The position numbers and the translations under genes are program-made. Under the pieces are notes generated by a model. That model worked only from the letters and a program-made list of their open reading frames with translations. It searched no databases and was not told where the DNA came from. A stretch of 63,254 nucleotides of DNA, the filler included, from Pelomyxa schiedti (taxonomy: Eukaryota; Protista; Evosea), in assembly GCA_020536535.1 (NCBI GenBank). It is 6 parts of 6 records of this genome, joined end to end, with 100 filler letters (N's around TTAATTAATTAA, not from the genome) between each part and the next. Parts side by side here need not be neighbours in the genome. Positions count along the whole stretch, not along the records: positions 37,028 to 63,254 come from JAHLWZ010000500.1; 5 more parts are not named here. One strand, written 5' to 3'. This document shows, piece after piece, positions 37,687 through 60,175 of this stretch; positions within the stretch are counted from its first letter, which is position 1, and every line of letters starts with the position of its first letter.

Positions 37687-38240
37687 TTATACTAGCTCTT
37701 CAGACCACGTTGCCTCAACTGGCATTGCGCCAGTGCAGGTTGCCTGAGCTGTGATGATGGTGGAAGCAAATTTCAGTTTGAAGGTCAACTGAGGGCGTTT
37801 GTTGAAGGGCTGCCCAACCCCAGGAATGTTTTTCACTTCCAAACAGCCGGGTACCTTGTGCACCCCAGGGTCATCAGGATAGCGTACATTGCGGCTCTTT
37901 GACCTGTAAATCTCGAACTTCGCAGAGTCTTGTGTGGAGCTACCTGGGGAAAACGGGAAAGATACTTCGGCGTCAACTGCAATGGTGTCTCCACACCGCA
38001 CGAATACGTGAAGAACGTCACATTGCCTCTGCCCATCAATTTCAAATGTGGGCCTGCCTGGGTGTCGAGGAGCAACCTCTATTGTCGACACAGCGTAGGT
38101 GTAAGGCATGCATCTCTTTGTTATACACAGCGGATGTTCACCAAATATAACAGCTCCTTCCAAGACAGATGACAAAGGAAAGTTCGGGTTACACACCTTC
38201 CTCTCTGGAGTTTGAAGGGCCGTTGTCATGATTCTGCGGA
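37687..38240 (-). CDS. HSPA12-like Hsp70, gene A, C-terminal part (end of NBD plus beta-sandwich domain)
   Basis: SVLEGAVIFG..ITKRCMPYTY...F.P....QDSAKFEIYRS...FASTII; 38120-38240 is identical to 42342-42462. Confidence 0.88.
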
Positions 38241-38466
38241 NNNNNNNNNNNNNNNNNNNNNNNNNNNNNNNNNNNNNNNNNNNNNNNNNNNNNNNNNNNN
38301 NNNNNNNNNNNNNNNNNNNNNNNNNNNNNNNNNNNNNNNNTTTTACGAAAGGGGGTTCACCATCACTGGGACTGGAATAAAGTGATGTGGGAAAAAGTAG
38401 TGAAGTGGGGGAGAATTCTCTTTTATACCCATTCTTGGTCAACAGGCACCAGTAATTACTTCGCTA

Positions 38467-41400
38467 TCAGGATTGTGCCAAGAACACAAAGGCTTTCTGG
38501 TGGGCAAAACGAGGGATAACACAGAACTCCACTCTGCCAGGAAAAGGCCTTTGCTGGTATTGTAAGTATTAGAAAGATCATAACATGGACGAGAGCACAC
38601 CGTGGGAAAAACTTGCATGAAGTCCCTGTTAAATTGTTCTCCTGGCATGGGATAGCTGAATTCACAGGATGAGCACAGCAGGTAAATTTGTACGATGGCA
38701 ATGCAGGTTGTCCTGCAGGCTGGAAGGTTGAGTGACTGTTCCACACAAATCCCAAGTTCTTCATTGGTTTGAGCGTGTGCTGGCTTGGTGTCATTTCTCT
38801 CTTTCACAAGCTCCACACATTTGTCCCACATGTTTTTACATAGTATGGCTTGTTGCCTGGGATCTTTGCGTACAGAGGGCAGTACATCCAACGCGAAGTT
38901 GGTCAAGGTGGAATTAAAAAACTCCTTTGCCTGGATTATAACCTCATAGGCTGCTATAGAACCCGAGGCCCTAGATTTATTTGCCTTTTGAAGCTCAGCA
39001 GTTCCTGTGTTCTTTCTGGTTTTTATTGCACTTCGCACTTGCTCTTGAAGCATCATCGCATCTGTATTTTGCTTACATAATCCAACAATTGTGTTTGGTG
39101 AGTAGACTTTCTTGATGTTTCTGAGAACTGACTGCATTTCTTCAAGTTTTTGGGTCATGGTCTTGGTTGTGATTTCATCATCAGAACTAATCTGCTTCAG
39201 CTTGGACTCAACAGCTTCTACACTGTTGCCAAAGTTAATACTTGGATCACCGATTCTTTCAATCTGCCCCTGTGCCCACAATGAGAAAGCCATGGCTTTG
39301 GCCATGTAGTTGTGGAAGTTATCATTTGCAATCCCCCTGTTGAGACTCTTAGAAACTAAATGTCCTTTTTCAGTTTTCAGTGTATGAAGGTCATCTAATA
39401 ACTTCTTAACCTCCCGAAAGAGGTCTTGTGCCCTCTTTTTTCCAAAAAGACTAAGAAAGAGAAAAGTGATACAAATGAAACACACGTCAATATCACTGAA
39501 CTGAGCCTCCTTTAGCAAGGCAAACTGTGATTTGACGGATTTCCATTTATTGTGGTTTTCATTCTCCCAGTCCTTAACGACTTGAAGAAGCACTGCCTCC
39601 TGGGATAACAAGTTAAAACAAAAAGTCTTACAGTAAGACTACTTGAGCTTTAGCTTCTTGCAACGTAACAATATTAGCTGTTAAAGATGAGAGGCAACGT
39701 TGGCCCTTATTTGCCCAATCGAGTAGTGCTCTTGCAGTGGTAAAGAACTCTTTTTGTATACGGTCTGGTGTGGTTTGCCTTAAAAAACCGATTTGCAATT
39801 TTGGTGATAGGATCATAACCATACTTTTCCAATTCGGCACTTATAACTTGAAAGTAGCTGTACTCCAGTATTTCCATTTTCAACCAGGTACTTTCAATTT
39901 GCTTGGAACAGTGCAATGGAGGTTGGCGGTGTAATTGAGATTGAGCTTGTGTGATATCCCTTTCCAAATCAGCAATTTTCTCCTTTTGTGTTTGTTTGTG
40001 TCTCTTTGTTGCAAGGTAAATTGTATGCTTCCAATGCACCTCTTGAGCAGAACGAAGAGTATTGTCAAATTTTGGCGGGATTTTGAAGAACTTCATCTCT
40101 TTGCACACCCAGGCCTCAAGCTTTTTTTTTTTTTTTGTTAAGTAACAATAACTTTTTAATGATGATGGCCAATTTACCTCACAAGAGTTTTGGAAATTAG
40201 AGACAATCGCAGTCAAATAATTAACAGTGGGGTCTGATTCCAGTTTCAGATTGGCAACATGTGATTGCAAACTTGTAGCTTTTGAAGTTAACTGAGGATC
40301 CCATAAGGATGAAAAGAGTTTCAGCCCCAAATCTGGGTCTTCTGAGAGCCCACAAAACGCGTCTCTCTTTCTCATAAGATCTTGTTCAAGATCATTCGAA
40401 TCTCTAATTAGCTGCAGTTCTGTTTGGTGTCTCACTTTGATAGCTTCTACTCTTTTCTGAAGTCGTGACTGCTCCTGTCTGGCTGCCTCTATTTCCCGAC
40501 AAAGTACAGAAGTACTGAGTATTTCAGCAGGCATAGGGGCTGTACTGAATTTCAGTTTATCCACAGACATATCAAGAACTTCCGCACAACTACTTGTCAC
40601 TTTTTCAATTCCGGTTTCATATGACTTTTGTGTGCAATCAGAGAGCCTCTTTTCTAATTCAAGAGGCTCCTTTTCTGCCCACGCTTTAAAGTTAACTGTC
40701 CTGCCAAGAAGACGCAGTGTATTTCCCATTGCAGCCAGACTTGAATTCACCTCCTCCAGCTTGAGCGTGATCCCCTTGTTTCGTAATATTACATGGAAAT
40801 GGAATTTGCGTTTCAGTTACCAGCATATCATGGTAATTCTGACTCTCCAACTCTTGCTTCTGTAAAGACAATCTTTGGTATGTTGGATGTCTTTTACGGT
40901 ACTCCACCTCTAGTACTTTGACTGCCTCCTGTCTCAACAAAAAAAAAGAAAAGAAAAGGGTACAGAGGGAAGTGAACAGTAAGGTGTAGAAAGGGAGACC
41001 CGATACTATTGTTTACCTGTATATTATTGGAAGAAGAAGAGGCAAGCTTCTTAGAGGAGCTTGTAAACCAGCTAAGAAATGCATTGGTTTCTTTTAAGAA
41101 TATTTGCTGGTTTTCCTGGTTTTGTCTTTGCCTTTTCTCTTCATTATGAAGCAGAGTTGCATATCGTACTTCAGATTTTGTCATCTCATTCCAACTGTTC
41201 TCCATCACATCAGCCCTTTTCCTAAGCTGTGCAGAAAGTTGTGGGCAACCACCCTTCGAAAACTCTTGATGCAATGTATAGAGGCTACTTTGAAGTTGTT
41301 TTCGTTCCACATCTTTCCCAGATTTTTCTGCAGTGAAGCAATCTCTCTTGTTTATGAGAGACTGAATTCCAGTGAGAGTGTTATCATAATCTGTTCCTTT

Positions 41401-43606
41401 CTGGAAATATTGTGTCCAGTGTTGAATCCATCCAATAACCTGCAATATTGTCAGGAGTTAAAAAAACGGACTTGGTGAAGGATGTGGCAGCAATACAACC
41501 TTTTCCATGGATTTATGTGCATTCATTGCTTTGCCACACAGGAGGAGTGTTTCAGTGAATTTTGTCATCCATTGATCAGCGGCAGTCACTCGTGCCTTGG
41601 AAGCAGAATGTCGAAGCTTGTTCAGTTGTTCGTGGAGTGAGTGCAAATCAGATCGAAATGACGATGTAATTTGTTGGAGGTTCATGTCAGGCCGACTGGT
41701 GAGAATTTCAAACTCCTCGTATTTGCCTTGGAGCTTGCATTCAAGTTCTTTGTAATCCTTGGAAGACTGATACTCCGTCACATATTTTTGTTGCATGGAA
41801 TCGACTTTTTTACAAAAGGATTCATGCCCCTCATTCGCTGACTTCATTTCCAAAGAGATTAAATCTGTTGGTTCCGCCTTGAGCAATTCAAAGATTTCTG
41901 CTATTTCATTCAACTTCTTCTTTGATTCGGCGATGACCTCGGAACAACTTCTCTCCGCAAATTCTATGTCCGCTTCAACCTGCTTCTCATGGTGACGGAT
42001 CCTTTCTTCCAATTCTGAAGTTTCCCTCTGAATCCAAGCAGCAAACTGTGTTGTGCCTTCACGAAATTGCAGGGTTTTCTTCAACTGAGGAAAGTTTGCA
42101 CAAACAGCCTGATAAGTGGACTCGACTTTCTACGGAGGAAGTGAATCAAAAATACATAGACAAAAACAAATAAAAACATGCCTTGACACCTGGAAAACCT
42201 CCAACCGGACGCCGCTTTGACATTTCTTGGAAGAGTATTGTTAAAGAGTCCATTGTGCTAATCTAGAATGGATTGGATCAAAAGGCCACCATTCGCCAAT
42301 TGAAACTCACCTCCCCATGTGTGTCTGTCATGCGTCTCTTCGTTATACACAGCGGATGTTCACCAAATATAACAGCTCCTTCCAAGACAGATGACAAAGG
42401 AAAGTTCGGGTTACACACCTTCCTCTCTGGAGTTTGAAGGGCCGTTGTCATGATTCTGCGGAAGACTTCACAACGGCTGAGTCCACCAACGAGGTAAATT
42501 GCGCCGACGCGCACATCGCCAAGGTTGGGGATGATGTTGTTCAAGATGTGGTCGCTCGCGCGAGTCGCCTGCTCGACAATTTTATTCGTGAAAACGGATG
42601 CGTCCAGCCTGAGTCTGCTTGCTTGATAAGATTGGATCAAGGGGCTGTTGAAGTCAGAAATAAGACTGGCGAGCTTCGGCTTGCCCATTGCTTTGAGCGC
42701 GTCGTAGATGCAGCTCGCAGAGGCATTGATCCTTGTGGTAAGTGCATTCACACTGAGCTTCGCTGACTCGATTTCATCTTCCAGTTCGAGCCAATTGAGA
42801 TCCGCCTTCGCTCTTTCCAAGACATCGGAACCGAACACCTGTTGAAGAAAGCCAATGACAGTCTCGTTTACATAAGTGGACCCCCACGCACCGCCGCTGG
42901 GAGGATACAGTTCAACGAGTTCCGTTTCAGTCTCGCACTTGTGAACACCGATATCAACAGTGCCTCCCCCAGCATCCACGATGATGTAAGTGGATCCGAC
43001 TTCGAGCCCCAGGCTGTGTTTTATTGCAACCGAGGCCGCCTCGGGCTCCAAAGCGAGTGTAACGTCTTGAAGTCCGGCATTGGATGCGCATCTGACCATG
43101 AAAGACTTCGCGCCCTGGTCCCATATCGCTGGTACAGTCAGTATCCACTTGACGTTAGCCACCGTGGTTATGAATTCTCTGTTCATGTGTCCCAGCGCCA
43201 TTCCGACGATGTATTTTAAGACCCTGGAGATAACCAGTTCCAGGGGAAGGTGCACTTCTGGTTTGTTCACACATTCTATTTCGCGTGTGGCCGACGTTCC
43301 ATATATAAGTATCCTGAAGTTCCTGAAGTAATAAACTTCTTCGACTTGTGTGGGGTCTAAATTTTGCATGAAAACCCTTGCCTCCCGTCCGAACTTGATG
43401 GCTTCGTGTGGTTCCGTTGCATTAAGCACAACTTCGGTGGGTACTTTTTGTTGTCCTGATACCGTCTCAGGCCACTCGGCAAACACGATCTGCCCACTTC
43501 TGTTTCGTGCGTCACGAAAGGCGTAGCCACTGCACGCGGAACCCAAGTCAATGGCGCAACACACTGGTCGATCAACCGCTGAGGACTCCACGACAGCTGT
43601 ACACAT
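38467..43606 (-). CDS. Gene B: HSPA12-like ATPase domain + spectrin (alpha-actinin-type) repeats + C-terminal GrpE/Mieap-like domain
   Basis: Intronless NBD (AIDLGS, WILTVPAIW, ALEPEAA, VDAGGGTVD, SGGAWGS, VGGLS). A GTGAGT donor after ..TDTHGE splices in frame to W-containing helical repeats (LEAW..F...FDNTL..W..ME..Y...EL). The last exon encodes QRPFPGRVEFCVIPRFAHQKAFV. The gene model is hand-predicted. Confidence 0.8.
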
Positions 43607-44897
43607 AAAGAGAGACCGTCCCCTCCAGCCGATTTTTGGTACTTTTTCCCTTCTTTGGACCAAATAGGTTTTTCATCATCAGCTTAGGGTTATGGACAAG
43701 GAAAATCGCCAAGTTTCACGTGAAAAATCGGAAACCCAAGCAACGGTAGTTTGTAAACACTTCGAGTCCCGTTTCACACTCAACACAAGTGGTGCGGAGG
43801 AGTTACTGCACTAACTCTCCCAGTTCTCAGCTCACACACTTATGGTGGCTAGTTAATTAAAGTTTATTTTTATTTTTCTATCTTTAATGGTCTAGTTGTT
43901 ACAGCCAGGACTTGGCCATAAGCAGGCCTTGCAAACACCAGATTGTTTTGGCTTCTCTCCCCCAGCTTTAGCTATATTGCACGGAACTGTTTACCTTTTC
44001 ATGTGGACCTATGAAAAACTCTAATTTCTTCCCTAAAAGCTGCATAAAGGATTGACTTGGCGCACAGCATGAACAGGAAGGCAATGTATGTATGCCACTG
44101 TTTTTTTCCTTGTTTTGGGTACCACCAATGCCAAGTTCTAGGGCAGTGAGACTCCGCCTGCTTACTGACTGGGAAGTTTGGTCTTGCCTCTTTCTCTTCC
44201 TTTCGAAATTGTTCCTTATTGCTTGGAACTCGGTTTGTACCCACCATGGCCCCACTAACATGCCAGCAGATACCCGGACTGATGGAGCACTGCACTGACC
44301 AACAGCGCCACCTCAAAGTATGCTAATTCTGGCCTCCCTACCACTTTCTCCTGTGTGCGCCTCGCACCAGAGCCCCAGCAGCCCACCACACACAAAAAAA
44401 AGAAAAAAACAAGCTGAGGTTTGGGATCTTTGCATACAGAGGGCAGCTGAGGTTTTTCCCTGTTTGGCCCATTTGACACACGTCATCCACGCTGCGCATC
44501 ACCTCGTAGTGCCGGACGCGGGGAAAACCTCCACAACATGGGTGGGTCACTGACATCAGTTGCCGGGAGCAACACCTGCGAGTTAGTTTGTGACTGCGCT
44601 TGAGAGTGGGACCACTGAGACTGTGATGGTGAGTAGTAGAAGGAAAAGAAAGAGAAATCATTCCGAAATAAAGAATGATCTTTTCTTTTTCTTCACCAAA
44701 ACCCGCCATCTTTTTTTCGTTGAAACATCAACATTCTGATTGATGTCAGGATTTTGTCAGGAACACAACGGGCCCATTTTACGAAGGTTCACCATCGCTG
44801 GGACTGGAATAAAGTGATGTGGGAAAAAGTAGTGAAGCGTGGGAGAATTCTCTTTTATACCCATTCTTGGTCAACAGGCACCAGTAATTCTTCGCTA

Positions 44898-47800
44898 TCA
44901 GGATTGTGCCAAGAACACAAAGGCTTTCTGGTGGGCAAAACGAGGGATAACACAAAATTCCACGCTTCCAGGACGTGGATTTTGCTGTTAGAGCAAGTGT
45001 TAGCAAAAAAAAAAGGGCCAGCCACAAAGAGTTCTGGAGCACACCGTGGGAAACACTTGCATTGTGTCCTTGTTAAACAGTTCTCCTGGCATGGGGTAGC
45101 TGATTTCACTGGATGGCGAGCACAACAAGTAGATTTTTGCCGTAGCAATGCATGTGTTTCTGCAGGTATCAATTGGAAGGTTGAGGGACTGTGCAACAGT
45201 AATCCCAATTTCTTCAGTGCTTTGCGGGCGTTCTGGATTGGTGTCACTTCCCTCTTTCACAAGCTCCACACATTTGTCCCACATGTTTTTACATAGTATG
45301 GCTTGTTGCCTGGGATCTTTGCATACAGAGGGCAGTATGTCCAACGCGAAGTTGGTAAATGTTGCATTAAAAAACTCCTTTGCCTGGATTATAATCTCAT
45401 AGGGGGGGGTCAAAGGAGGGATAGAAGGGAGAGTTGTAGGAGGAGTATGCTGAGTTGGAGAGAAATTAGGTGCTGAAGTTGCAGATGGAGCAACTGGTGC
45501 CCTTGATGCAGATAGCCCTGGGCATGGCTCAGTGTGTCCACCAAGTCGTTGATATTCAGCCCTCAAGGCGTCATAACTTTGATGCAGAGATACAAGTTCT
45601 TGCTTGTATCTGCTGGTTTCTTCTTCATTTGCAGGTTGAATAATGCCCTATTAGTTTAGTTCAAATTAGGTGAAAATGATAAATCAGGTATAAAATGAAG
45701 GCTGGACCTTGGTTGGGCATTCAAGCATCTTATTCACGAATATCAGTGAGGATCTTAAATTCCACATGTCTTTGGAAGACTGGAAAGCTGTTATATTTTT
45801 ACTGGCATGGCTTATTTGTACCAGTTCTGTTATATTATTTGTCTGCGCAATGAAGTTCTTATTTAGTTTGATGTGTCCGTCAATAGCCTTCAAAAGAGCT
45901 AGATTTCTGTTTTCTATCCCATTTACTATGGCCATACTTTGTTGTTCTATGGAATCTGCAGTTAAGAGGCATTCAGTGGGTGCAATATGCATCTCATTTA
46001 TGAGAGCCCACTGCTTTTCAATGGCTTGCTTCCTCTCCTGCAATTGCTGCATTAATTCCTTCTTCTCTCTCTCTAGCTCTTCTTTGAGTCTCAGCAGCTC
46101 TTCTATACTACTATTCCTAAACATAGAAGCCCGCATGATCATGCACTTTGATTGTACCCACAGTACAAAGTTGAGGGCTGCAATATTTAAATCACCTAGA
46201 ATCTGCTCCTTTCTCTCCTCATTCCGTAGTGCAGCTTCCAATTTTTCTTTTTTGGTTTTTTTGTAATCGATAAGAGATTGCCATAGTCGAAGCATATCCG
46301 CAAAACCCGTTTGTATTTTCTGGAGGGTAAATAATGTGTAAGTACTGAATAAAATGTGGGATTGTTGTAACACAAACCGGGGAATCGAAAAAGTCGTTTG
46401 TGAGTAAATAAGTGGCATACTCCAAGAGGCATCGTAACGAAATCTCTTTGTTGATTCGCTCATTGCACTTCCAGAACTCAATAATCTGGTTTAATACAAA
46501 TGAGTGCCCAGAAGACCTATCAAATAGCAGCTACTCCTCCGGTCTACAAACCTGCACTTGGGCACCATGTAACGTGCTGACTGGGTCGAGTCTTGTGAGT
46601 GTGCCTTTGATCTCAGCACATGCAGCTTGGTGCTTTTTCATTTCTTTTGTGAATTTCTTCTCAACATCATCAAGTTTTCTTTGTCTGTTAAGGAAGTTCT
46701 TTTTGTGAGGCTATAATAAAAAGGATACACTTGTACCTTTCTAGTTCTGCTCCGAGTTTTGCAAAGTGTTCTTGCTCCGTAGTCTCCATCTCTGCCCATA
46801 GTTCTTCGACCACTGTGGGTTTGGATCTATCTGGAATATCAAATGACAGATGTGACAGTGATGTAAAGTAGGCATTCAGTTGAGACTTCTCTTCAGATTT
46901 ATGGATTTTTATTGTGATGTGCTGACTGTACACTTCTTCCAATTTTTGAGCACCTGATAATGTGTTGTCAAATTTAGCCCCCCTAAGCAACTTTAGCTCT
47001 GCTTTTATCCAGTCAATAACCTGGTATTAGCGGAAAAAATGAGACTAAAGAATTACAGATAAAAACGAATACCTTTGATGACAAGGAGCAGTATTCTGTT
47101 TGAATTTCCGTCTGCACACTATTTTTCAGCTGAAGGAATTTATTAGACAGTGAGTTGCTCTTTGCCTCAACTTCTCTACTTATGGTTTCTGTCTTCTTTG
47201 TGCTTGCTTGAATTCCAGTGTGCTGAGTATCCAATAAGTTTAGTTGTTTTTGGAAATCATCCAATTGTGTTCTCCATTTTTGGGCTTTCTTAACAAGGTC
47301 ACAGTGTGAGGACTCTGATGAGAATATTTTCTGATACTCCAAAAGAAGGTTCTCCAGCTTTGCTGCCTCCATTGAAAATAATCGGAACTTGTTTGCCAGT
47401 TGGAGCTCGGCGTCACCATTGCTCTTTCTTGTTTCCATTGCACTCTTTAGCTGTCCCTGGAGTTGTTCCACTTGGAGCCTTTGTTTACATAATTCATCAA
47501 TGGTGCGTGGTGGATAGACTGTCTTGATATTATTGAAATCCAATTGCATATCTTCAAGTTTTTTTGTCATCTCTGTGGCTGTCATTTCATCAAAGGAGCT
47601 AATCTGGTGCAACTTGGATTCAATGGCCTCTACCCCAGTTCCAAAGTTGAGACTTGACTCCCTAATGATCTCCATCTTTCCACGGACCCACTCAACAAAT
47701 GCAAAAGCTTTTGCCATATAGTTGTTGAAGTCATCTTTTGCAGTACCCTGTCTGAGATTTTTGGAAACTAGACGTCCCTTTTCATGTTGAAGTGCGTCAA

Positions 47801-50800
47801 GCTCATTGAGCAACTTGTCAACCTCCTTTAAAGTGTCATCTACCCTCTTTTTACCCATGAAAGTAAGAAGGTGAAAAGGAGAGGAAATTACACACCGCAA
47901 TATTTATGAAAGAACCACTCTTTAGCAGTGAAAAGTGTGAGTGTATTAGTGACAACTTGCTCTGGTTTTCAGTTTCCTCTTTTTGAACCCGAAGAAGCAT
48001 AGCCTCCTGGATAGGGTAAAGAAAAATGAAACACCAATGGAACAAACCTGATCTCTTGCATCTTTCAAAGTAGCCACGTCAGCTGTTATAGTTTGGAGAG
48101 CACTTTTACTCTTCTTTCCCCAATCAGATAGTGCCATAGCAGTGCCAAAGAATTCGCGTTGCTTATTGTCTAGGTTTGTTTGCCTTAAACGATTCGATTT
48201 ACAAAAAATTGATCGAAAGGAAAGTAGCCATTGCATACCGGGCCAATTCTGTGGTGATACTTTGAAAGTAGGCATTCTCCAGCTTTTCCATTTTTAACCA
48301 GACACTGTCAATTTGCTGTGAACACAGCAAAGGAGGGGAGTAGTGGAATTTCTCTTGGGCTTTTATGATAGACTTTTCTAAACCCACATAATTCTCCTTT
48401 AGTGTTTGTTTTGATCCCTTTATTGCCAGGTAGTCCTTGTGCTTCGCGTGTAATATTTGAACACAATAGAGTGTGTTGTCAAATATTGGTGCGATTTTGA
48501 AGAATTTGATCTTCTCAGACATCCAGGCCTCAAGCTTTTTTTTTTTTTTTTTTGGAAAAAGATGTATGGGTAATTTTGTCATTAAATGCTTATAGATGGC
48601 ACACTTCAGTAGACTTTTGTATATTAGAGACAACATCTGCCAAATAACGTGCCAATGCTGGGGCTGTCTTACTTTGGCACTTGGATGCAAGTGATTGCAA
48701 ACTTTTAGCTTTTGTATCTAATTGAGGCTCCCACAATTGTGAAATACGTCCGAGTTCTGTATCTTCTGTGAGCTTACAGAAGGTTTCTTTCTTTCTCATA
48801 AGTTCTTGTTCAAGCTCAGAAGAATCTCTGATAAACTGTAACTCTGTTTCGTATCTCTTTTGGATTGGTTCAACCCTTTTAGGTAATAATGTTTGCTCAA
48901 GTTTTACTTTCTCCATCTCCTGAGAAAGGGTAGTCATGGGCAGGGCCATTGGCTTGGCCAGAAATGTCTCATAGATTTGTTTCAGTTTATCACCAGAAGT
49001 GTCAAGGACTTGTGCACAACTATTTCTAACTTTCTCTATGCCACTATCATATGACTTATTGGTGCAATCAGAGAGCCTCTTTTCCAGCTCAACAGGTTCC
49101 TTTATTGCCCATACTTTGAAGTCAACTACCCCAATGAGGAACCGTAGTGCATTCCCCAATGCATCCATAGCTGCCTTCACCTCTTCCAGTTTGGATACAA
49201 CCAGCTTGTTTGTAAAAGTGACATTCAATGCAAATTGCATTTAGGTTACCTGTATATCATGATAATCCTGATGGGTCAAATCTTGTTTCTGCAAAGACAA
49301 ACCCTGTAAGGCAGGAAACTTTTTCCGGTATTCAGTTTGGATCACCTTGAGGGCATCCAGCTGTCTTGGCCAAAAAATGGCAGAGGTAAAGGTGAGATAA
49401 GGAAGGGGAGACATAACAGTGGTTGTCTAACCTGGGCTTCAAGTGACCCAGAAGGGGAGAGCCCAGAGGATTTTTTGCTCCAGGAGAGCAGAGCACTGGC
49501 GTCTTTGAAGAAAGTGCATTGTGTCGCGTCGATTTGTTTTTGCCTGTTCACTTGAAATGAGAAGGAAACCTTGTTTTGGAAATAAACCTTTCGATCTCTT
49601 GTTCCATTTGGGTAGTATATCCTCCTTCATATTTTATCATCTCATTCCAATTGTTCTCCATCACATCAGCCCTTTTCCTAAGCTGTGCAGAAAGTTGTGG
49701 GCAACCACCGTTCAAAAACTCTTGATGCAATGCATAGAGGCTACTTTGAAGTCGTTTTCGTTCCACATCTTTCCCAGATTTTTCTGCAGTGAACCCATCT
49801 CTCTTTTTTCTGAGAAACTGAATTCCAGTGAGAGTGTTATCATAATCTGTTCCTTTCTGGAAATATTGTGTCCAGTGTTGAATCCATCCAATAACCTGCA
49901 ATATTAACAGGAGTTAAAAAAACAAATTTGACAATGGTCCAACCTTTTCCATGGATTGGTGTGCATTCATTGCTTTGTCACACAGGAGGAGTGTTTCAGT
50001 GAATTTTGTTATCCATCGATCAGCGGCAGTCACTCGTGCCTTGGAAGCAGAATGTCGAAGCTTGTTCAGTTGTTCGTGGAGTGAGTGCAAATCAGATCGA
50101 AATGACGATGTAATTTGTTGGAGGTTCATGTCAGGCTGACTGGTGAGAATTTCAAACTCCTTGTATTTGCCTTGGAGCTTGCATTCAAGTTCTTTGCAAT
50201 CCTTGGAAGACTGATACCCCGTCACATATTTTTGTTGCATGGAATCGACTTTTTTACAAAAGGATCCATGCCCCTCATTCGCTGACTTCATTTCCAAAGC
50301 GATTATGTCTGTTGGTTCCGCCTTGAGCAACTCAAAGATTTCTGCTATTTCATTCAACTTCTTCTTTGATTCGGCGATGACCTCAGAACAACTTCTCTCC
50401 GCAAATTCTATGTCCGCTTCAACCTGCTTCTCATGGTGACGGATCCTTTCTTCCAATTCTGAAGTTTCCCTCTGAATCCAAGCAGCAAACTGTGTTGTGC
50501 CTTCACGAAATTGCAGGGTTTTCTTCAACTGAGAAAAGTTTGCACAAACAGCCTGATAAGTGGACTCGACTTTCTGTGGGAGGTAGGATTTAAGAAGAAA
50601 GAAGGACAAAGTAAAAGCATGCCACAATATCTGGAAACGATTCACTCTGAAGCTGATTCACCTTTTCCTGCAAGACAGGTATGACTAAAGACTCCTTAGT
50701 CTCAATCTAAAGTGGATTAGGGCCAGGGAGTTACGAGTTTTCAACTGAAATCAACCTCAGATGACACTTTACCCAAAGGTTCTGATGTTGATGTCCAGAT

Positions 50801-51829
50801 TTTTTCAAGAGATACTTTTTTGCACCACTCCCGAATCTTGTCTGCCATTTGGAAGAATTCTTTTTGGACCTCAACAAGTTGCTGTTGCCTTGTAGATAGT
50901 TTGAAAAAAGAAGGTTTGGAGGGAAGAAAGAAAACCTGGTCAAAATCTGGGAGTAATTTGCTTCCAGTGTTACCATGTTGACCCAACTTTCCTCAATGCT
51001 CTCTAAACGGCAAACTTCACATCTGGGGTACTTTGCTACTATTTCTGAAAGAGAAGCCACAAGCTGTTGTTTCAAGGCCTCCTTTTCACTTTCTCTCTTT
51101 GGTTTCTCCTTCAGGTATTTTGCATACTTACTGCATCGAAGCATTATTCCTTCAATAGTATTGGTGGTTGTTTCTGGTTTTGTTTGAAAATCCAACAGGT
51201 ATTCTTTCACCCATAGTGCAATCTTGAAATGATAGTGAAAATTTTATAATCACGGAAAAAAAAAACAGGCTCACGTCATCAGCTTTTGTGTTAAAGCTTT
51301 TCATTTCTTGCATATCTTTGACACATAGTGATATTTGGTCCTTCATTTTTACCGAAGTTTCTGATGCATCACCACAAGGAGTTTTCAGTTTATTCAGCTT
51401 GTCTTCTAGGACTGTCAAAGTTGCGGCTCGGCTTTTCAGAGACTCTAAATCTGTTATTTGTCCCAACTGTGGTCCTGGCGGCTCTGTCATTAATGAGAAG
51501 GTGTGGTCAATGTCCGTTCCTTCCTTGGTTATGTAGTCACTGACTTGTTGCAGTGCTTGAAAATATAGGGTTGTTTGAGCCGGATTAGCCGCCTTGGTTT
51601 TTGCTACTTCTTCCAAGGAGGCAATCTTTTCAGAAGTTAGGTGGAAACGCGAGAGAGAACGCACAATTGGCGCCAGGTGGTCACAATTCTCGATAGTTCT
51701 AGAAGTTATTTGCTGCAGGACATACATAGGGTCCTGCTGTGAACTAGAAAACTTAAAACCACAATGAAATTGCAATTTTGGCACACCTAAAATATACGCC
51801 CATTGCCATTCACTCTGGCCCTACCGAAT
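44898..51829 (-). CDS. Gene C: long spectrin-repeat protein with C-terminal GrpE/Mieap-like domain (5' end unresolved)
   Basis: Multi-exon paralog of gene B with extra repeats. It ends YEIIIQAKEFFN..NFALDILP..MWDKC..SYPMPGELFNKDTMQVFPT|QNPRPGSVEFCVIPRFAHQKAFV. Confidence 0.8.
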
Positions 51830-51929
51830 NNNNNNNNNNNNNNNNNNNNNNNNNNNNNNNNNNNNNNNNNNNNNNNNNNNNNNNNNNNNNNNNNNNNNNN
51901 NNNNNNNNNNNNNNNNNNNNNNNNNNNNN

Positions 51930-52378
51930 GCCACCGTGGTTATGAATTCTCTGTTCATGTGTCCCAGCGCCATTCCGACGATGTATTTTAAGACCCTGGA
52001 GATAACCAGTTCCAGGGGAAGGTGCACTTCTGGTTTGTTCACACATTCTAGTTCGCGTGTGGCCGAAGTTCCATACAGATGCATCTTGAGCCTGTTGAAG
52101 TAAAGAACTGTGTCGACTTGTGTGGGGTCTAAATTTCGCATGAAAACCCTTGCCTCCTGTCCGAACTTGATGACTTCGTGTGGTTCCGTTGCATTAAGCA
52201 CAATCTCGGTGGGTGCTTTTGGCAGTCTACCAAATCCGAGAGCCGTCTCGGGCCAGTCGGGAAATACGATCTGACCGCTCCGATTGCGTGAATCACGGAA
52301 CGCGTAGCCTGTACATGCGGTACCAAAGTCTATAGCACAACGCACGTGTCGATCAGCAACTGGCGGCGCCGCAGCCAT
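51930..52378 (-). CDS. HSPA12-like Hsp70 N-terminus (probably the 5' part of gene A)
   Basis: CAIDFGTACTGYAF, KAPTEIVL, FGQEA and LKMHLY motifs; 51930-52050 is identical to 43158-43278. Confidence 0.88.
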
Positions 52379-52522
52379 CGGGTGAAAAAAAAACAAACGC
52401 AGTTAGTTCAGCTGAATCAACTGGTGATTTAGCACTTGCCGGACCTGCCCAACTTGGGGGATGGGCCCGTTTTGGGACACAACCAAAACTACAAAAACCA
52501 AAAAAGAAAACCACGAAGCTAC

Positions 52523-54063
52523 ATGGCGTACGTGCGTCTCCCAGAGTACAAAAAGGTGTGTTGTGCAATCGACTTCGGCACGTGGGGCACCGGATTTGCA
52601 TTTAGGGATTTTCTTGTACCCGGGACGACGCGTTATAGTACATGGCCACTGACAGACTCACCGAAAACACTCACGGAGGCACTCGTCGGGATTCAACCAC
52701 CTCACAAACTGAAGAGTTTCGGTTGTCAAGCAAGAGACGACCTGACCCGAATGACCCAAGCAGAAAGGGACCAGGTGATGCACTTCAAGCAGTTCAAAAT
52801 GCAACTCGCAGGAGAGGGCGACCGAAACTGGATGGTGAAAGACAACGAATACCCCGATCGCACAATCAACTTCAAGTTGCTCACAACGCGGTGCATAGAA
52901 TACGTGTGCGGGGTGGCGATGACTCAGATCAGCGCACAGTTCAGCACCGTCACCCCAGAACAAATACAATGGGTTCTTACCGTGCCGGCAATTTGGGACC
53001 AAGCGGCGAGGCGACTGATGTTGGATGCGGCTGAGGATGCGGGGCTCTTTGGTGTCATGATTGCTCTGGAACCTGAGGGGGCTTCTCTTGCCATAAGAGC
53101 AGACTTGCTTGATCTGCAAGTTGGAACCACTTATTTGATAGTGGACGCAGGGGGTGGTACCGTCGATATAACACTACATAGATGCACAAGTAACACCGAA
53201 ATATGTGAACTGTATCCCCCTTCTGGAGGTCCATGGGGATCTGCATCAGTCAACACTGGAGTCATTTCCTTCTTGAAAGATATTTTTGATCCAGATGGAG
53301 ATGTGTTTCCCCATGCAAAAAAAACTGAGTGGTATCAACTGGAAGATGATATTGAGTCACTCAAGCTTTTTGCCCGCGATACAGACGGAAGCACCGCCCC
53401 TATGAATTTCGATGCTTCCGTGATATATGGTGCTCTGCAAACTTTGGGCAAGCCAGAATTTTCAACCTTTGTTGATTCGTACAATACTTCTCCCACCAAA
53501 TCAACCCCGCCAATAGTAGTCTACCGTGAAAGTTCATTGAGACTCCCGACGTGTATCTTTACCAACATCATAAAACAAAAAGCACTGGCAACAAGTTCAC
53601 ACATTATAACCCATATTCTTCCAGAGATTACTGAGACCGTAAAAGTGTTCCTTGTTGGTGGATTCTCAAGAAGCGAGATTTTCAGAGATATCATCAAAAA
53701 AGAGCTCTCGCCTCTTCCTGTGAGTTGGCCCCACTTTCCAATCACTGCTGTCATGCAAGGGGCCGTTGAATTTGGAATCAATCCCATGTCGATCAACAAG
53801 CGATGCGTTCCATACACTTACGCCGTGCTCACTTCAGATTTGGCAGTGAACCACCCCGGAAGGCTTGCGTTTTGGACGGAGCAAGGCGAGAAGCGGTGCC
53901 ACGTGCTCAAGACCTTTGTGAAGAGCAAGGATATCATCAATGTCGAAGAGGTGATCCGGCATACCTTTTGCCCAATGACTCCACAACAAGAAAGCGTTGC
54001 GTTTACGATATACAAATCAAAGAAGAGAGAAATCACTTACCCGGAGGAGAACGGAGTCATCAT
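52523..54063 (+). CDS. Gene F: HSPA12-like Hsp70 with intact ATPase motifs, cut by a gap; probably continues into the vWA tail at 59675-59934
   Basis: AIDFGT, FKMQL, WVLTVPAIW, ALEPEGA, VDAGGGTVD, IESLK and VGGFS motifs; intronless. Confidence 0.92.
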
Positions 54064-54264
54064 NNNNNNNNNNNNNNNNNNNNNNNNNNNNNNNNNNNNN
54101 NNNNNNNNNNNNNNNNNNNNNNNNNNNNNNNNNNNNNNNNNNNNNNNNNNNNNNNNNNNNNNNTTTCCAGCCAGAACAAACACCCTTCGATTAATCACGC
54201 TCCTGTGCTGTTTTGATAGTCTAGCCCACAAGGGGACACATTTTCCTTTCGTGCCCACCACTTC

Positions 54265-54389
54265 CTGAAGTACTTCAGACAGCCGCCCCTTGGGGCGGCT
54301 GTTTTGCACATGGTTTTGATAGGACAGCCGCCCAAAAAAAAGGGGCGGCTGTTTTTACAGGAATTTGACAGGCCAAAAAACAGCCGCCC
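54265..54389. repeat. Cluster of inverted repeats (five ACAGCCGCCC copies in alternating orientation plus a 14-bp palindrome)
   Basis: ctgaagtacttcag; acagccgcccc-tt-ggggcggctgt; acagccgccc-a8g-gggcggctgt; a further copy at 54380. Confidence 0.85.
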
Positions 54390-54591
54390 TTTGATCCAGA
54401 TATGCATTCCACAGATATCTCTCGTTAAAGTTACCAAGTACTTGCTTGAAATAACAAAAGTCAGACTTTTTAATTTCCATAAACCACGTTGGAGTCCAGC
54501 AGCACCCAACTCACCGTCGAGGATATGCTGAATGTTGCTGTCAATGCCCCCACTTTTTCAGACTCTTTCCAATTTCAGGAATACTAACTAC

Positions 54592-56901
54592 ATGGCGCAC
54601 GTGCGTCTCCGAGAGGACAAAAAGGTGTGTTGCGCCGTCGAAATTGGCACGTGGGGCACTGGCTTCGCATTTAGGGATTTCGCTCGCACCATACCTACGC
54701 AATACGGCACATGGACACTGACAGACGCACCGAAAACACTCACGGAGGCACTCGTCGGGGTTCAACCACCTCACAAACTGAAGAGTTTCGGTTTTCAAGC
54801 AAGAGACGACCTGACCCGAATGACCCAAGAAGAAAGAGACCAGGTGATGCACTTCAAGCAGTTCAAAATGCAACTCGCAGGAGAGGGCGACCGAAACTGG
54901 ATGGTGAAAGACAACGAATACCCCGATCGCACAATCAACTTCAAGTTGCTCACAACGCGGTGCATAGAATACGTGTGCGGGGTGGCGATGACTCAGATCA
55001 GCGCACAGTTCAGCACCGTCACCCCAGAACAAATACAATGGGTTCTTACCGTGCCGGCAATTTGGGACCAAGCGGCGAGGCGACTGATGTTGGATGCGGC
55101 TGAGGATGCGGGGCTCTTTGGTGTCATGATTGCTCTGGAACCTGAGGGGGCTTCTCTTGCCATAAGAGCAGACTTGCTTGATCTGCAAGTTGGAACCACT
55201 TATTTGATAGTGGACGCAGGGAGTTATAGTATTGATATAACAGCACATAAATGCACAAGTGACACCGAAATATGTGAACTGTATCCCCCTTCTGGAGGTC
55301 CATGGGGATCTGAATCCATCACCACTGGAGTCATTTCCTTCTTGAAAGATATTTTTGATCCAGATGGAGATGTGTTTCCCCACATAGAAAAAAATGATTG
55401 GTATCAACTGGAAGATGATTTAGATACCCTGATGCTTCTTGCCCATGAGGGCCCCACCACTATGAATTTCGATACTTCCGTGATATATGGTGCTCTGGAG
55501 ACTTTGGGCAAGCCAGAATTTGCAACCTTTGTTGATTCATACAATTCCTCCCCCAAGAGATCAACACCACCCATACAGGTTTATCGTGAAGGTTCATTGA
55601 GACTCCCGACGTGTATCTTTACCAACCCCATAAGACAGAAAGCACTGGCAACAATTTCACACATTATAAACCGTATTCTACCAGAGATTACTGAGCCTGT
55701 AAAGGTGTTCCTTGTTGGAGGATTGTCACGAAGTGAGATATTCAGAGATATCATCAAAAAAGAGCTCGCACCTCTTCCTGTGAGTTGGCCCCACTTTCCA
55801 CTCACTGCTGTCATGCAAGGGGCCGTTGAATTTGGAATCAATCCCATGTCGATCAACAAGCGATGCGCTCCATACACTTATGCCGTGCTCACTTCAGATT
55901 TGGCGGTGAACCACCCCGGAAAGCTTGCATTTTGGACGGAGCAAGGCGAGAAACGGTGTCACGTGCTCAAGACCTTTGTGAAGAGCAAGGATATCATCAA
56001 TATCGAAGAGGTGATCCGGCATACCTTTTGCCCAATGACTCCACAACAAGAAAGCGTTGCGTTTACGATATACAAATCAAAGAAGAGAGAAATCACTTAC
56101 CCGGAGGAGAACGGAGTCATCATGGTGAAAGGTGGACTGACACTCAACAACGTGCCAAACCGCGGCAGACCGGTCAGTGAGAGAGAAGTTGTTGTCACAC
56201 TCAATTTTGGATCGACTGTGATTGCCGTTGATGTTGCACATGGCTCCCCCGCTTCCGCTCCCGATGCCGCTGCTGCTCGCCCTGCGACCTCTGTGAAGTG
56301 GATTGAAAGTATATCGTCCGTTTCGGAGGAGCAACTTCACTACCACATCGTGTTCTGTTTGGATGAGTCGGGATCCATGTGCGGCGATCCGTGGCGCGAA
56401 GTGAGCGAAGCAGTTGATGCGTTCGTCAAGTGCAGACTCCAAAAGTGCCCAACCGGAGACACCACATCCGTTGTGACATATAATCACGCTGCTCGACAGA
56501 GGCACAGTGGCCCACTTTCGTCTTTGGCTCCTGGAATTTTGGGAACAAACTCTGGTGGTGGAAAGTGCTTTGCAGTCGCGTTGAGTTTATGTGATCGAGT
56601 GCTGATGGCCACACGTGCTGAAAGCTGTTCAGGTGGAAGAACACCGATTTTGTTGTTCATGTCCGACGGCCAGTGTGACAATGGTCTGCAACAAATGAAG
56701 GATGTGCATGCTCACCACAAAGACAGTGGGCTGAAGATCTTTGTTGTTGGGTTTGGTGCCGGCGTCAACACTGCACAACTCGAAGCGCTTGCTGCTGCCG
56801 TGTGTGGTTCTTATTCTGTTGGGAAGAATGGTGCCGAACTGGTCAACACTTTCACCCACATCTCATCAGGGTTATCGTCCTTTCTCAAACACAATTGTTG
56901 A
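54592..56901 (+). CDS. Gene G: HSPA12-like Hsp70 with degenerate nucleotide-binding motifs, fused to a C-terminal vWA domain
   Basis: Intronless 769-aa ORF and paralog of F. The vWA domain starts at ~56341: IVFCLDESGSM...LLFMSDG...IFVVGFG. Confidence 0.93.
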   Translation: MAHVRLREDKKVCCAVEIGTWGTGFAFRDFARTIPTQYGTWTLTDAPKTLTEALVGVQPPHKLKSFGFQARDDLTRMTQEERDQVMHFKQFKMQLAGEGDRNWMVKDNEYPDRTINFKLLTTRCIEYVCGVAMTQISAQFSTVTPEQIQWVLTVPAIWDQAARRLMLDAAEDAGLFGVMIALEPEGASLAIRADLLDLQVGTTYLIVDAGSYSIDITAHKCTSDTEICELYPPSGGPWGSESITTGVISFLKDIFDPDGDVFPHIEKNDWYQLEDDLDTLMLLAHEGPTTMNFDTSVIYGALETLGKPEFATFVDSYNSSPKRSTPPIQVYREGSLRLPTCIFTNPIRQKALATISHIINRILPEITEPVKVFLVGGLSRSEIFRDIIKKELAPLPVSWPHFPLTAVMQGAVEFGINPMSINKRCAPYTYAVLTSDLAVNHPGKLAFWTEQGEKRCHVLKTFVKSKDIINIEEVIRHTFCPMTPQQESVAFTIYKSKKREITYPEENGVIMVKGGLTLNNVPNRGRPVSEREVVVTLNFGSTVIAVDVAHGSPASAPDAAAARPATSVKWIESISSVSEEQLHYHIVFCLDESGSMCGDPWREVSEAVDAFVKCRLQKCPTGDTTSVVTYNHAARQRHSGPLSSLAPGILGTNSGGGKCFAVALSLCDRVLMATRAESCSGGRTPILLFMSDGQCDNGLQQMKDVHAHHKDSGLKIFVVGFGAGVNTAQLEALAAAVCGSYSVGKNGAELVNTFTHISSGLSSFLKHNC

Positions 56902-57220
56902 GTGAGCTTTGTTGTGTAAAAAAAATCCATTATCCTTTCTGACTAATTTTCTTACTACTTACAAACCCAGTGCAAAATGCCAGGAAGGAAGGGGAAATTG
57001 AAAAAAAAAATCTTTCCTTGTGTTTGTGTCACCAAACTTCCAGCGTGGTGTGGTTGTGCAGGGCGATTCGCCATGGCAACCATCGACTAGTCTTGGTAAA
57101 TCTGGTAAATAATATCCAAAGTCTTGGTATGTGGATGAAGGTCTCCATGTGGAATATGAGGTCTTTATCTTGCAAGTATTATGAATATTACAAAACTATT
57201 TGGTCATTATCTTACTCAGT

Positions 57221-58037
57221 TTAATCTTCCAGTAATCCAACAGCTTTGGCCTGTCGATTTTGGTTGTAATAAAAAGCCGGCAGTATATAAAAATCCACTT
57301 TTCCTTTCATTTTGTTTTGCTATCGCATTTAGTCAAAAATTGGCAAGAAGAAAAAACACACTGCTGGAAAAACTTCAATATCGTTTATTGTCAAGCTATC
57401 TGGTTCACAGTAGGAATATTCATCTGGTGACACCAAAGTATGCACACAGATATTTAACATAGAGCAACATATTTCCTGTATCTTGGCACTTTTAGGGAGA
57501 TCAGACAGCTCAAGCATTTCATGGCAAAGATTTTCAAGAACTTCTGTGGTGACTGGAGTACCAGCTGGAGACTGATAGTCCACAATATGCCTGCTGCAGT
57601 TGAAGCACAGGCCCCACATTTTTTTGCACATCATAGCCTGGTTTCTAATGTTACAATCAATCTGTGGAAGTTCATCAAGAACCAAGTTCACGAACATCTT
57701 GAAGAAAACAAAAATTAGTCCCACACTTGCTAAATGTATGTACATTTCTGAAGTCCTTGTACCACAAGAAAATCTCATATTGTGGAACATGGGACACAGA
57801 GTATTTCAAGTGAGCTACCGTTACACTTTGAGCCGTGGCGCAGTGCTTACGAGGTGGTTGCACTCTGGGCTTTTTGCGGTGGTGGTGATGATGGTGATGG
57901 TGGTGATGGTGCTTGTGGCTGTGGGCCGTGGGTGTCGCCGTCGGTGCCGGTTCGGAACCCGTATTTGTTTGTTTAACACCGAAGTGCTCGCTTGTTGCAC
58001 TGTCCTCATCAGGGGCTTTGTGAAAGCAAGAACCCAT
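57221..58037 (-). CDS. Gene D: small N-acylation-motif (MGSC), His-rich protein with GrpE/Mieap-like domain
   Basis: Three exons: ..YEIFLWYKDFRN|MFVNLVLDELP..QAMMCKKMW..IEVFPA|QNKMKGKVDFYILPAFYYNQNRQAKAV. Intron positions are shared with E and with B/C. Confidence 0.8.
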
Positions 58038-58137
58038 CTACTGGTCCAGTTCGAAAGGAAAAAAAGGGGCTTCCGGTCCGTTGATGAAGTCCTGTCCCAT
58101 CAAAGAACAATTTGGTAAAAAAAACAAGCAAGCAAGT

Positions 58138-59574
58138 ATGGAGCAGGAGTTGAACTGCATTACTTTGACCCTTCGTGGTGTTCTCTACACGCAGCAGAAA
58201 ACCCTCAATTTGGTGCAGTCTATGATAACGTGGAATAGAAACGAATGCGACAGGCAACTATCCGAGATCGCGTCGCTTTTGGCCACCACCTCCGGTCACA
58301 TCTCGGCCTTCGAAAACGAGTTCACATTTCTACGCAGACAGGCACCAGTTAACACTTCGTCGGCAGCCTCTTCTTCAGCTTCCCCCCCACAACACAAGGT
58401 AGTAACCGTTCCTATTGCTCCTGATTCAGCACAACACAGAGCAATACCACCAGACACACCGGCAACGCCCCCGTTAACAGCACCATCAACGGTACAAGCT
58501 GCTTTGCCTCCTCCTCCAGATTCCCGTTTCGGTTCTCCTGTCGGAACAAATGCTCCCAGTACTGCCGTTGGGGAGAAACACAATCATACACAGCATACAC
58601 CTTCAATTCCAGTTCCACGCAAGGTTCAGGGTACAACAGCTCAGCCAAGAAATACAGGTGGCTCAAGTCAACTGGTACCAGGACAAGCTGGATCAAGAAT
58701 ATGTTCTGCCAGTGCTATGAGGATTGCACAGAGTAGTCATTTAAATACAGAGCCCCCAAGGCGATCCTCTCCGACCGTACCAATACCACACGGTCCCTCA
58801 GTGTCATCACGTATGCAAACAAGCTCCCACCAGCCTTCACATCACAAGCACCCTGTTTCAAGTACTCAAGAAAACAAACTGCAACCGCAACCGCAGCAAC
58901 AACTGCAACAGCCGACACAACAACAACTGCAACAGCAGACACAACAACAACCGCACTTTGTTCCAAGTACTCAAGAAAACAAACTGCAACCGCAACAACA
59001 ACCACAATCGCCCATGCCACAAATATCAAATTCACTGTCACAACGAATTAGCGTGTGGCGCGCGGCTCCGCATTATGAACTTCTAATTTTGTTGAAACAA
59101 TTTAAAAATGTAAAAAGCCACTTCAACCTCTGTAATGACCAAAAGTAGGACTTGACGAACTTTGTATTGGATACTCTCCCCAATGCAAACTTTAAGACGC
59201 CAGAGCAGCAAGCACAAATATTGCATGAGATGTGGAAATTTCTTGCTGAAAGAGTCTCCCAAATCTTACAGCAGCAGAACCCTGGAGTTCAAGATCCTGA
59301 GAACGTTATTACCGAAGCCATTAACAGTTTGATCACTTGGTTGAAACCAATTGGACAAGAGAAAACTATTTGTGGACTATGTGAAGTGATGGTCAAACTA
59401 TGCTTTGCCACCATTGGCAAGCCAGAGTATGGATTTGTATTCTTGGAGCCAAAAACACCCTTTATTCCATCACAGATGGATGTGTTTCCCAGCTTGCAGG
59501 CACCACCCCAATCTGGGATTGTTTCACTGTGTGTTATACCAGGCCTCACATATGGTAAGACCATCCAAGCACGT
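58138..59574 (+). CDS. Gene E: short coiled coil + P/Q/S-rich linker + GrpE/Mieap-like domain (end in gap)
   Basis: YELLILLKQFKN|DLTNFVLDTLP..QQAQILHEMW..FVFLEPKTPFIPSQMDVFP..GIVSLCVIPGLTYGKTIQAR. Confidence 0.82.
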
Positions 59575-59674
59575 NNNNNNNNNNNNNNNNNNNNNNNNNN
59601 NNNNNNNNNNNNNNNNNNNNNNNNNNNNNNNNNNNNNNNNNNNNNNNNNNNNNNNNNNNNNNNNNNNNNNNNNN

Positions 59675-59934
59675 CACCGATTTTGTTGTTCATGTCCGAC
59701 GGCCAGTGTGACAATGGTCTGCAACAAATGAAGGATGTGCATGCTCACCACAAAGACAGTGGGCTGAAGATCTTTGTTGTTGGGTTTGGTGCCGGTGTCA
59801 ACACTGCACAACTCGAAGCGCTTGCTGCTGCCGTGTGTGGTTCTTATTCTGTTGGGAAGAATGGTGCCGAACTGGTCAACACTTTCACCCACATCTCATC
59901 AGGGTTATCATCCTTTCTCAAACACAATTGTTGA
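59675..59934 (+). CDS. vWA C-terminal tail, second copy (probably the 3' end of gene F)
   Basis: Near-identical to 56642-56901, with two synonymous changes and a different downstream flank. Confidence 0.8.
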
Positions 59935-60175
59935 GTGAGCTTTGTTGTGTAAAAAGAAAGTTGTTGTTTTGTGAAAGAAAAATCTTGACTCTTTTTCTTT
60001 TTTGGGTCTTTGGATCTGCCATGCGCTTCTCAGAGGCTGGAAAGACCACGAAACGGTAGAATGTGTCTGGTCCAGACATCTCAGAATTTTCTCTTCACAG
60101 GTGGCTCGAATGATACTATGAGATTAGGAGTAGAAGTAGTAGTAGCCGGCGAATAGTAAGTAGTAGTAGTCCTCT

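Follow-up and report, generated by a model that had tools for sequence, protein, structure and literature searches.

Pelomyxa schiedti is an anaerobic, free-living archamoeba (Archamoebae) in whose genome a single scaffold, JAHLWZ010000500, carries four genes that end in the same domain of about 145 residues, interspersed with genes for HSPA12-like ATPases of the Hsp70 type. The question raised by this locus is to which family the domain belongs, and what its association with Hsp70-type ATPases says about its descent and its role. The window under analysis is a stretch of DNA of 63,254 nucleotides in which positions 37028-63254 are this scaffold (26,227 bases with four 100-N gaps, at 38241-38340, 51830-51929, 54064-54163 and 59575-59674), and all positions given below count along the window unless another scaffold is named. 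The published genome of P. schiedti comprises 52.4 Mb in 5337 scaffolds, and its genes contain 7.4 introns each, of which nearly all are of the GT-AG type (PMC8887013). The best explanation of the locus, which we regard as probable, is that the domain is a very divergent member of a pan-eukaryotic Mieap/GIL1-IRKI superfamily that has been expanded in P. schiedti and fused to, or clustered with, HSPA12-like ATPases.

Four paralogous copies of a C-terminal domain

The four copies, named A (38467-38948, minus strand), B (44898-45401, minus strand), C (57221-57779, minus strand) and D (59074-59574, plus strand), are paralogues of one domain. A preliminary description of the scaffold had proposed a common C-terminal domain in four genes at these positions; all four copies are located there and the proposal is borne out by BLASTP and profile matches. 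Copies A and B share 77% identity, copy A matches copies C and D in BLASTP searches (1e-8 and 4e-7, respectively), and the four are recovered by a hidden Markov model (HMM) with E values of 1e-25 to 1e-60. The profile made from the copies matches four places only in the six-frame translation of the scaffold piece. In the family profile each exon is entered as a separate, unjoined row, the spliced forms of A and B being the GenBank proteins KAH3761889 (P0002, the product of gene 1, which holds copy A) and KAH3761890 (P0001, the product of gene 2, which holds copy B). The short last exons are also matched on their own in a profile search (A with E 4e-10, B with E 5e-10 and C with E 7e-3), and that of copy A was found with E 5e-7 in a separate one.

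A HMMER profile search of 1.84 billion representative proteins returned six real matches, all from P. schiedti, and found no relatives outside this species. Two of the six are P0001 and P0002 from the present scaffold, while the remaining four (P0003-P0006) are paralogues encoded on a 134-kb scaffold (JAHLWZ010000804.1). There they form a second cluster at 29235-54552 of that scaffold, in the order P0004, an HSPA12-like gene (590 amino acids), an HSPA12-like gene that also encodes a VWA domain (795 amino acids), P0005, P0003, a gene of 106 amino acids and P0006. P0004 consists of two copies of the domain, P0005 of a rod followed by the domain, and P0003 of two HSPA12-like domains and two copies of the domain. 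The gene order of the second cluster mirrors that of the present scaffold, each cluster holds one HSPA12-like gene and one HSPA12-like gene with VWA, and the family as a whole numbers about ten copies, divided between these two paralogous clusters. Since one cluster is a paralogous duplicate of the other, the neighbourhood that they have in common carries about the weight of a single observation.

In two gene models the domain is fused via a rod to HSPA12-like ATPase domains, of which there is one in P0002 and two in P0003. P0002 is a protein of 1485 residues with the GenBank name 'heat shock 70 kDa protein 12A' and is laid out as an HSPA12-like ATPase domain, a rod of about 900 residues and domain copy A. 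P0001 (1245 residues, 'hypothetical protein') has a rod which is homologous to that of gene 1.

Probable relationship to Mieap and GIL1/IRKI proteins

Mieap is composed of coiled coils and disordered regions which are followed by a structured, hydrophobic C-terminal region that has been proposed to bind cardiolipin/phosphatidic acid (PMC10845071). The formation of condensates is a further trait ascribed to MIEAP proteins. The domain of P. schiedti likewise stands at the C-terminus behind a coiled-coil or disordered region in P0001, P0002, P0005 and the gene of copy D. Two AlphaFold2 models were obtained, model 1 from copy A with an alignment of the paralogues (predicted local distance difference test, pLDDT, 71; predicted template modelling score, pTM, 0.63) and model 2 from the domain of P0005 (pLDDT 79, pTM 0.71), and both have the same topology of four helices and a three-stranded sheet. 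A fold search of the ESM Atlas with model 1 returned a cluster that is 100% PF16026 MIEAP at a template modelling (TM) score of 0.73 (by query) over 150 of 151 residues with 3.3 A, an unnamed ascomycete (fungal) family at TM 0.70, and two PF24994 GIL1_IRKI_C clusters at TM 0.66-0.67 over 147-149 residues. Language-model features point in the same direction: of the 30 named clusters that lie nearest to the P0005 domain, 23 are MIEAP, with 172 of 256 features shared and scores of 0.91-0.92, a range that is linked to true family membership in the method's own calibration, and for copy D the nearest named clusters are GIL1_IRKI_C and MIEAP at 0.84. The likeness to Mieap and GIL1/IRKI which had been noticed earlier by eye is therefore upheld by predicted fold and language-model features but not by Pfam or PDB profile matches; a PDB sequence search with copy D and a search with the family profile gave noise only (e.g. 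nsp7 and PP2C at E>0.1).

Small alpha+beta shapes often recur, and the domain could instead be a lineage-specific orphan that arose in Pelomyxa/Archamoebae and came to look like MIEAP and GIL1_IRKI_C by convergence on a simple shape of helix bundle plus hairpin. All relatives that are detectable by sequence come from P. schiedti and there is no Pfam match, as would be expected of such an orphan. Convergence of this kind would, however, have to account for a match at TM 0.73 over almost the entire domain, for the joint appearance of three separate families from animals, plants and fungi in the fold search, for an independent language-model signal that names the same Pfam families, and for a C-terminal place after coiled coils as in Mieap, and we consider it unlikely.

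The predicted models and their features make it probable that the domain is a very divergent one of the Mieap/GIL1-IRKI type. Compared with MIEAP (Mieap/SPATA18, PF16026), it is alike in predicted fold, in language-model features and in its C-terminal place after coiled coils or linkers. Unlike MIEAP, it has no HMM match, occurs in about ten copies in an anaerobic amoebozoan, is joined to spectrin-like rods and HSPA12-like ATPases, and is present as two tandem copies in some proteins. With the C-terminal domain of the plant GIL1/IRKI proteins (PF24994) it shares the fold, the features (in the case of copy D) and the C-terminal place, whereas the Pelomyxa proteins differ in being without an HMM match and without a DUF641 region and in having other partners.

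Several points weigh against this assignment. Pfam searches returned nothing relevant for the open reading frames (ORFs; E<=0.1) or for eight domain sequences (E<=10), with no MIEAP, GIL1_IRKI_C or GrpE among the matches, and no candidate was scored when the family alignment was run against 5.8 billion proteins in a word-indexed profile search. The fold comparison sets predicted models against predicted models, those of the Pelomyxa domain deriving from alignments of little depth (8-11 paralogues, all of a single species), and it was the weaker of the two (model 1) that was used in the Atlas fold search. Foldseek searches of the PDB found no solved structure with the same fold. The fusion with ATPase domains in turn depends on gene models, since the junction between ATPase domain and rod in gene 1 is a gene prediction which uses a GC..AG intron, and P0003 may merge neighbouring genes. 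The binding of lipids, finally, may extend to the Pelomyxa domain only by analogy with Mieap. Because the HMM test fails, the domain is not assignable to PF16026 itself, and because no solved structure has this fold, a biochemical function is not transferable.

Is the domain related to GrpE?

Each chain of GrpE contains a long helix, two helices of the bundle and a domain of six strands; the protein dimerises by way of the long N-terminal helix and a four-helix bundle to which both chains contribute, and it speeds the release of nucleotide from the ATPase domain of Hsp70. The preliminary description had drawn a parallel between the end of the Pelomyxa domain and GrpE, and in the last three strands the order of the motifs (F..P/M.V - G.V..V..G[FLY] - [KR]A.V) does parallel that of GrpE, by eye and with no statistical backing. 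The idea is kept alive by the fact that the domain is fused to, or encoded beside, Hsp70-type ATPase domains in both clusters. It would imply that the domain, and with it the MIEAP superfamily, descends from GrpE or works like it, binding the nucleotide-binding domain of the HSPA12-like ATPases, whether part of the same protein or encoded nearby, as an exchange or regulatory factor.

In Foldseek searches of the PDB the five best matches of model 1 are all GrpE (T. thermophilus, human GrpEL1 and M. tuberculosis), with E. coli GrpE listed too, all of them weak; in the Atlas fold search with the same model a GrpE cluster appears at TM 0.40 only. This match falls away with the better model 2, for which GrpE is found at rank 24 with E 4.4 and is outside the top 50 of an exhaustive search. 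Profile searches yielded no GrpE at E<=10 in Pfam (eight sequences) or the PDB (family profile). An hhalign comparison with E. coli GrpE and an enterobacterial alignment gave a probability of 0.2%, and is of low power because the GrpE homologues obtained are from Enterobacteriaceae only and are 86-99% identical. Among the papers searched, none connects a GrpE-like fold with Mieap, GIL1/IRKI or HSPA12.

The Pelomyxa domain is thus alike to GrpE (PF01025) in its helices followed by a small sheet, in the order of its strand motifs and in its association with Hsp70-type ATPases, but it is unlike GrpE in having four helices and three strands, against two bundle helices and six strands, and in the lack of any significant sequence, profile or fold match. 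The neighbourhood with ATPases, being shared by duplicated clusters, speaks for GrpE roughly once. Homology to GrpE is unsupported, and a GrpE-like module acting on the HSPA12-like ATPases is decidedly improbable. The preliminary description had staked its case on the splicing of its introns and on a profile or structural match to GrpE-like folds; the introns hold, as set out below, whereas no significant match to GrpE was found.

Exon structure of the copies

The last motif of the domain had been said to lie in another frame behind a phase-0 intron at VFP[TA]|Q in three copies, and this is what is found in A, B and C. In each the frame is lost just after VFPT or VFPA and is regained with Q... 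after 47, 60 and 42 nucleotides, respectively, and the three introns are all phase 0, begin with GTGTG and end with AG. Copy A, which forms the C-terminus of gene 1 on the minus strand, has a first domain exon at 38601-38948 (YE... to VFPT), an intron at 38554-38600 (47 nt, GTGTGC..CAG) that is spliced alike in the GenBank model P0002, and a last exon at 38467-38553 which contributes 28 residues, including G.V.FCVIP..KA.V, and the stop codon, and which is recognised by the HMM. Copy B is organised in the same way at the C-terminus of gene 2 (minus strand), with a first domain exon at 45045-45401, an intron at 44985-45044 (60 nt, GTGTGC..CAG), both as in the GenBank model P0001, and a last exon with the stop codon at 44898-44984, again matched by the HMM.

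The gene of copy C, on the minus strand, begins with an exon at 57744-58037 which encodes MGSC..., a run of histidines and then YEIFLWYKDFRN. A predicted intron 1 of 46 nt (57698-57743, GT..AG) follows in the same place as the confirmed intron of copy D. The main domain exon at 57362-57697 (MFVNLVLDELP ... VFPA) is identified by BLASTP and HMM, intron 2 occupies 57320-57361 (42 nt, GTGTGT..TAG, phase 0, VFPA|Q), and the last exon with the stop codon lies at 57221-57319, where both RNA and HMM matches are found. Copy D differs in being free of an intron at the VFP position. Its first exon, at 58138-59109 on the plus strand and covered by RNA at 58862-59109, encodes a short helical start, a linker rich in Q, S and P and then YELLILLKQFKN; its intron lies earlier, after FKN (59110-59148, 39 nt, GT..AG, FKN|DLT), and from 59149 to 59574, over a stretch partly identified through RNA, the domain runs unbroken through the last motif until it is cut by the gap at 59575.

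The RNA evidence consists of contigs of single-cell transcriptome runs from one study, filed as 'protist metagenome', which are the sole public RNA runs to contain the stretch; the contigs were examined over copies C and D. Contigs from two runs (X2 and X4) omit exactly 57320-57361 in copy C, and one contig of run X2 omits 59110-59148 near the start of the domain in copy D. With regard to the junctions, RNA thus confirms the VFP intron of copy C and the FKN intron of copy D, while the VFP introns of A and B are supported by their sequence, by their homology to C and by the GenBank models. Annotated versions of the VFP|Q phase-0 intron occur in P0006 and, lying two codons further on, in P0005, which argues that it is old within the family; it is absent from copy D, P0003 and P0004. 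Since in most copies it separates the last strands from the rest of the domain, plain ORFs miss the last motif. The domain is hidden from the ORF track to this extent, as had been claimed, but copies A and B are already spliced in the GenBank models.

The sole RNA contig that spans the predicted intron 57698-57743 of copy C retains it. The same contig, from run X2, is without 59 nt inside the copy (57566-57624), with non-canonical ends and 2 nt of microhomology. This segment was considered as an intron and rejected, its ends being non-canonical and its removal frame-breaking; the skip might reflect an artefact of template switching, an allele or an aberrant transcript. A further GT..AG intron of 53 nt (57163-57215), shown by an RNA contig to be spliced, is situated in the 3' untranslated region, 6 nt past the stop codon of copy C.

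The genes of copies C and D

Neither copy C nor copy D has a GenBank gene model. The gene of copy C is predicted to encode about 242 residues, starting with MGSC... (58026-58037) and including a run of 11 histidines at about 57870-57905, and resembles in length and start the annotated paralogue P0006, which has 239 residues and starts with MGNVYC. In the gene of copy D the short helical start is separated from the domain by the Q/S/P-rich linker of about 300 residues. Both MGSC and MGNVYC combine MG with a nearby cysteine and look like starts that are subject to N-myristoylation/palmitoylation; judged by their sequence, such starts, which are typical of N-terminal acylation, would also point to membranes.

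The missing annotation, the truncation of copy D by a scaffold gap, and the one RNA contig across intron 1 of copy C, which retains the intron and carries the frame-breaking skip, could be taken to mean that C and D do not work as genes and are fragments of pseudogenes in decay or artefacts of the assembly. This is very improbable indeed, as removal of the introns leaves an open frame in each, both give rise to transcripts that are correctly spliced at canonical sites, copy C is like the annotated P0006 in length and start, and the conserved residues are retained in both.

Neighbouring genes

The ATPase domain of gene 1 is located at 42311-43606 (minus strand), at the N-terminus of P0002, where it takes up about residues 1-440, and is recognised by Pfam HSP70 with 25 bits (cutoff 20.6). 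Between it and copy A lie the exons of the spectrin-like/coiled-coil rod at 38949-42262 (minus strand), which were delimited by sequence comparison with P0002. The rod exons of gene 2, delimited by the same means, extend over 45402-51784 (minus strand); the GenBank model begins at 49240, homologous exons run upstream to the gap, and gene 2 probably starts further upstream than the model. Weak Pfam Spectrin matches are obtained in the paralogues P0001 and P0005 and not in P0002. Genes 1 and 2 cease to be homologous within a small intron 3' of the ATPase exon of gene 1 (42263-42310), at 42274/50718, their homology starting 12 nt ahead of the acceptor of this intron. Such a breakpoint in the sequence fits a fusion by exon shuffling, the junction itself being a prediction.

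Between copies B and C sit a stand-alone HSPA12-like gene and an HSPA12-like gene with VWA, both identified by Pfam. The former lies at 52436-54063 (plus strand) and its end is lost in the gap at 54064-54163. The latter has an open frame of 789 amino acids at 54532-56901 (plus strand), of which the public annotation covers 573 amino acids, to 56250, and omits the VWA domain; its paralogue on the other scaffold is annotated with 795 amino acids, including VWA. RNA contigs at 55597-56865 diverge from the scaffold sequence by some 2-5% (in the two long contigs, 32 differing letters out of 833 and 40 out of ~1100), and are probably derived from a paralogous VWA gene or another allele. The HSPA12-like domains of the scaffold match PF00012 with 25.0 and 25.4 bits (cutoff 20.6) and in addition MreB_Mbl, while the HSP70 match of P0003 reaches 39.9 bits. 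By these HSP70/MreB matches and by their GenBank names the neighbours and fusion partners of the domain are alike to the HSPA12A/B-type Hsp70s, but unlike these, the Pelomyxa forms are cut short after the ATPase domain and carry on as a rod with the Mieap-like domain, or else gain VWA.

Downstream of copy A an annotated gene of 191 amino acids (37687-38432, minus strand) contains a fragment that resembles the end of an HSPA12-like ATPase and is broken by the gap at 38241-38340.

Assembly gaps

The gaps at 51830-51929 and 54064-54163 touch no copy of the domain. To the right of the first lies an HSPA12-like fragment (51930-52396, minus strand) that is 85% identical to gene 1 at 43158-43574 and ends after about 155 residues, while to the left there is rod coding sequence and no ATPase domain. 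This fragment was weighed as the start of gene 2 and rejected as unproven, since such a gene would lack about 300 residues of its ATPase domain. The 121 bases at 51709-51829 recur with 100% identity, as the reverse complement, at the very end of the scaffold (63134-63254, its last 121 bases), a repeat which suggests either overlapping contig ends or a mis-scaffolded inverted repeat. Continuity across the gap is unsupported because the fragment stops, the left side is rod, and the contig edge repeats the scaffold end in inverted orientation.

At the second gap the stand-alone HSPA12-like ORF runs into the N run, and its paralogue on the other scaffold extends for about 55 residues more. Continuity is unsupported here as well, as nothing past the gap matches these missing residues, and an ORF at 52436-54268 that reads through the N run was discarded as an artefact.

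The gap at 59575-59674 had been noted to truncate the final motif of one copy, and it does remove the last few residues of copy D. They are missing because the sequence past the gap is the end of a VWA gene and not of copy D: at 59675-59958 the 3' end of the HSPA12-like gene with VWA (56642-56925) is repeated as a 98.9% copy. Another HSPA12-like paralogue with VWA is probably hidden in this gap.

Possible role and significance

If the Pelomyxa domain is a divergent Mieap/GIL1-IRKI domain, its place in the proteins is suggestive of its role. It closes proteins whose upstream part is a coiled-coil/spectrin-like rod or a disordered linker, as in Mieap and the GIL1/IRKI proteins, and is probably the terminal module through which these long proteins, rod-shaped or disordered, are targeted, dock or bind partners. 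The C-terminal region of Mieap suggests, by analogy, that it may attach to a membrane lipid or to a partner, and it would thereby position the rod and the N-terminal or adjacent HSPA12-like ATPase and VWA machinery. To our knowledge no structure of the C-terminal domain of Mieap has been solved and there is no agreement on its biochemical activity, and we know of no co-chaperones of the HSPA12-type Hsp70s. A bolder and rather far-fetched idea, less probable still than that of a GrpE-like module in Pelomyxa, is that the superfamily formed by the Mieap, GIL1/IRKI and Pelomyxa domains is an ancient, unrecognised offshoot of GrpE which binds Hsp70-type nucleotide-binding domains, a partnership that would have been frozen into single polypeptides and gene clusters in Pelomyxa. 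If true, it would for the first time make the orphan HSPA12 ATPases and the Mieap domain alike accessible to biochemistry.

The kind of domain is already known, namely that of the Mieap superfamily. What is new is a form of it in Amoebozoa that is invisible to Pfam, its multiplication to some ten copies, its occurrence in fusion proteins together with HSPA12-like ATPases and spectrin-like rods, and two transcribed but unannotated genes, which add to the content of the public annotation. With this form the superfamily would reach a fourth eukaryotic supergroup, and the fusions and clusters in P. schiedti suggest a functional partnership between the domain and Hsp70-like ATPases.

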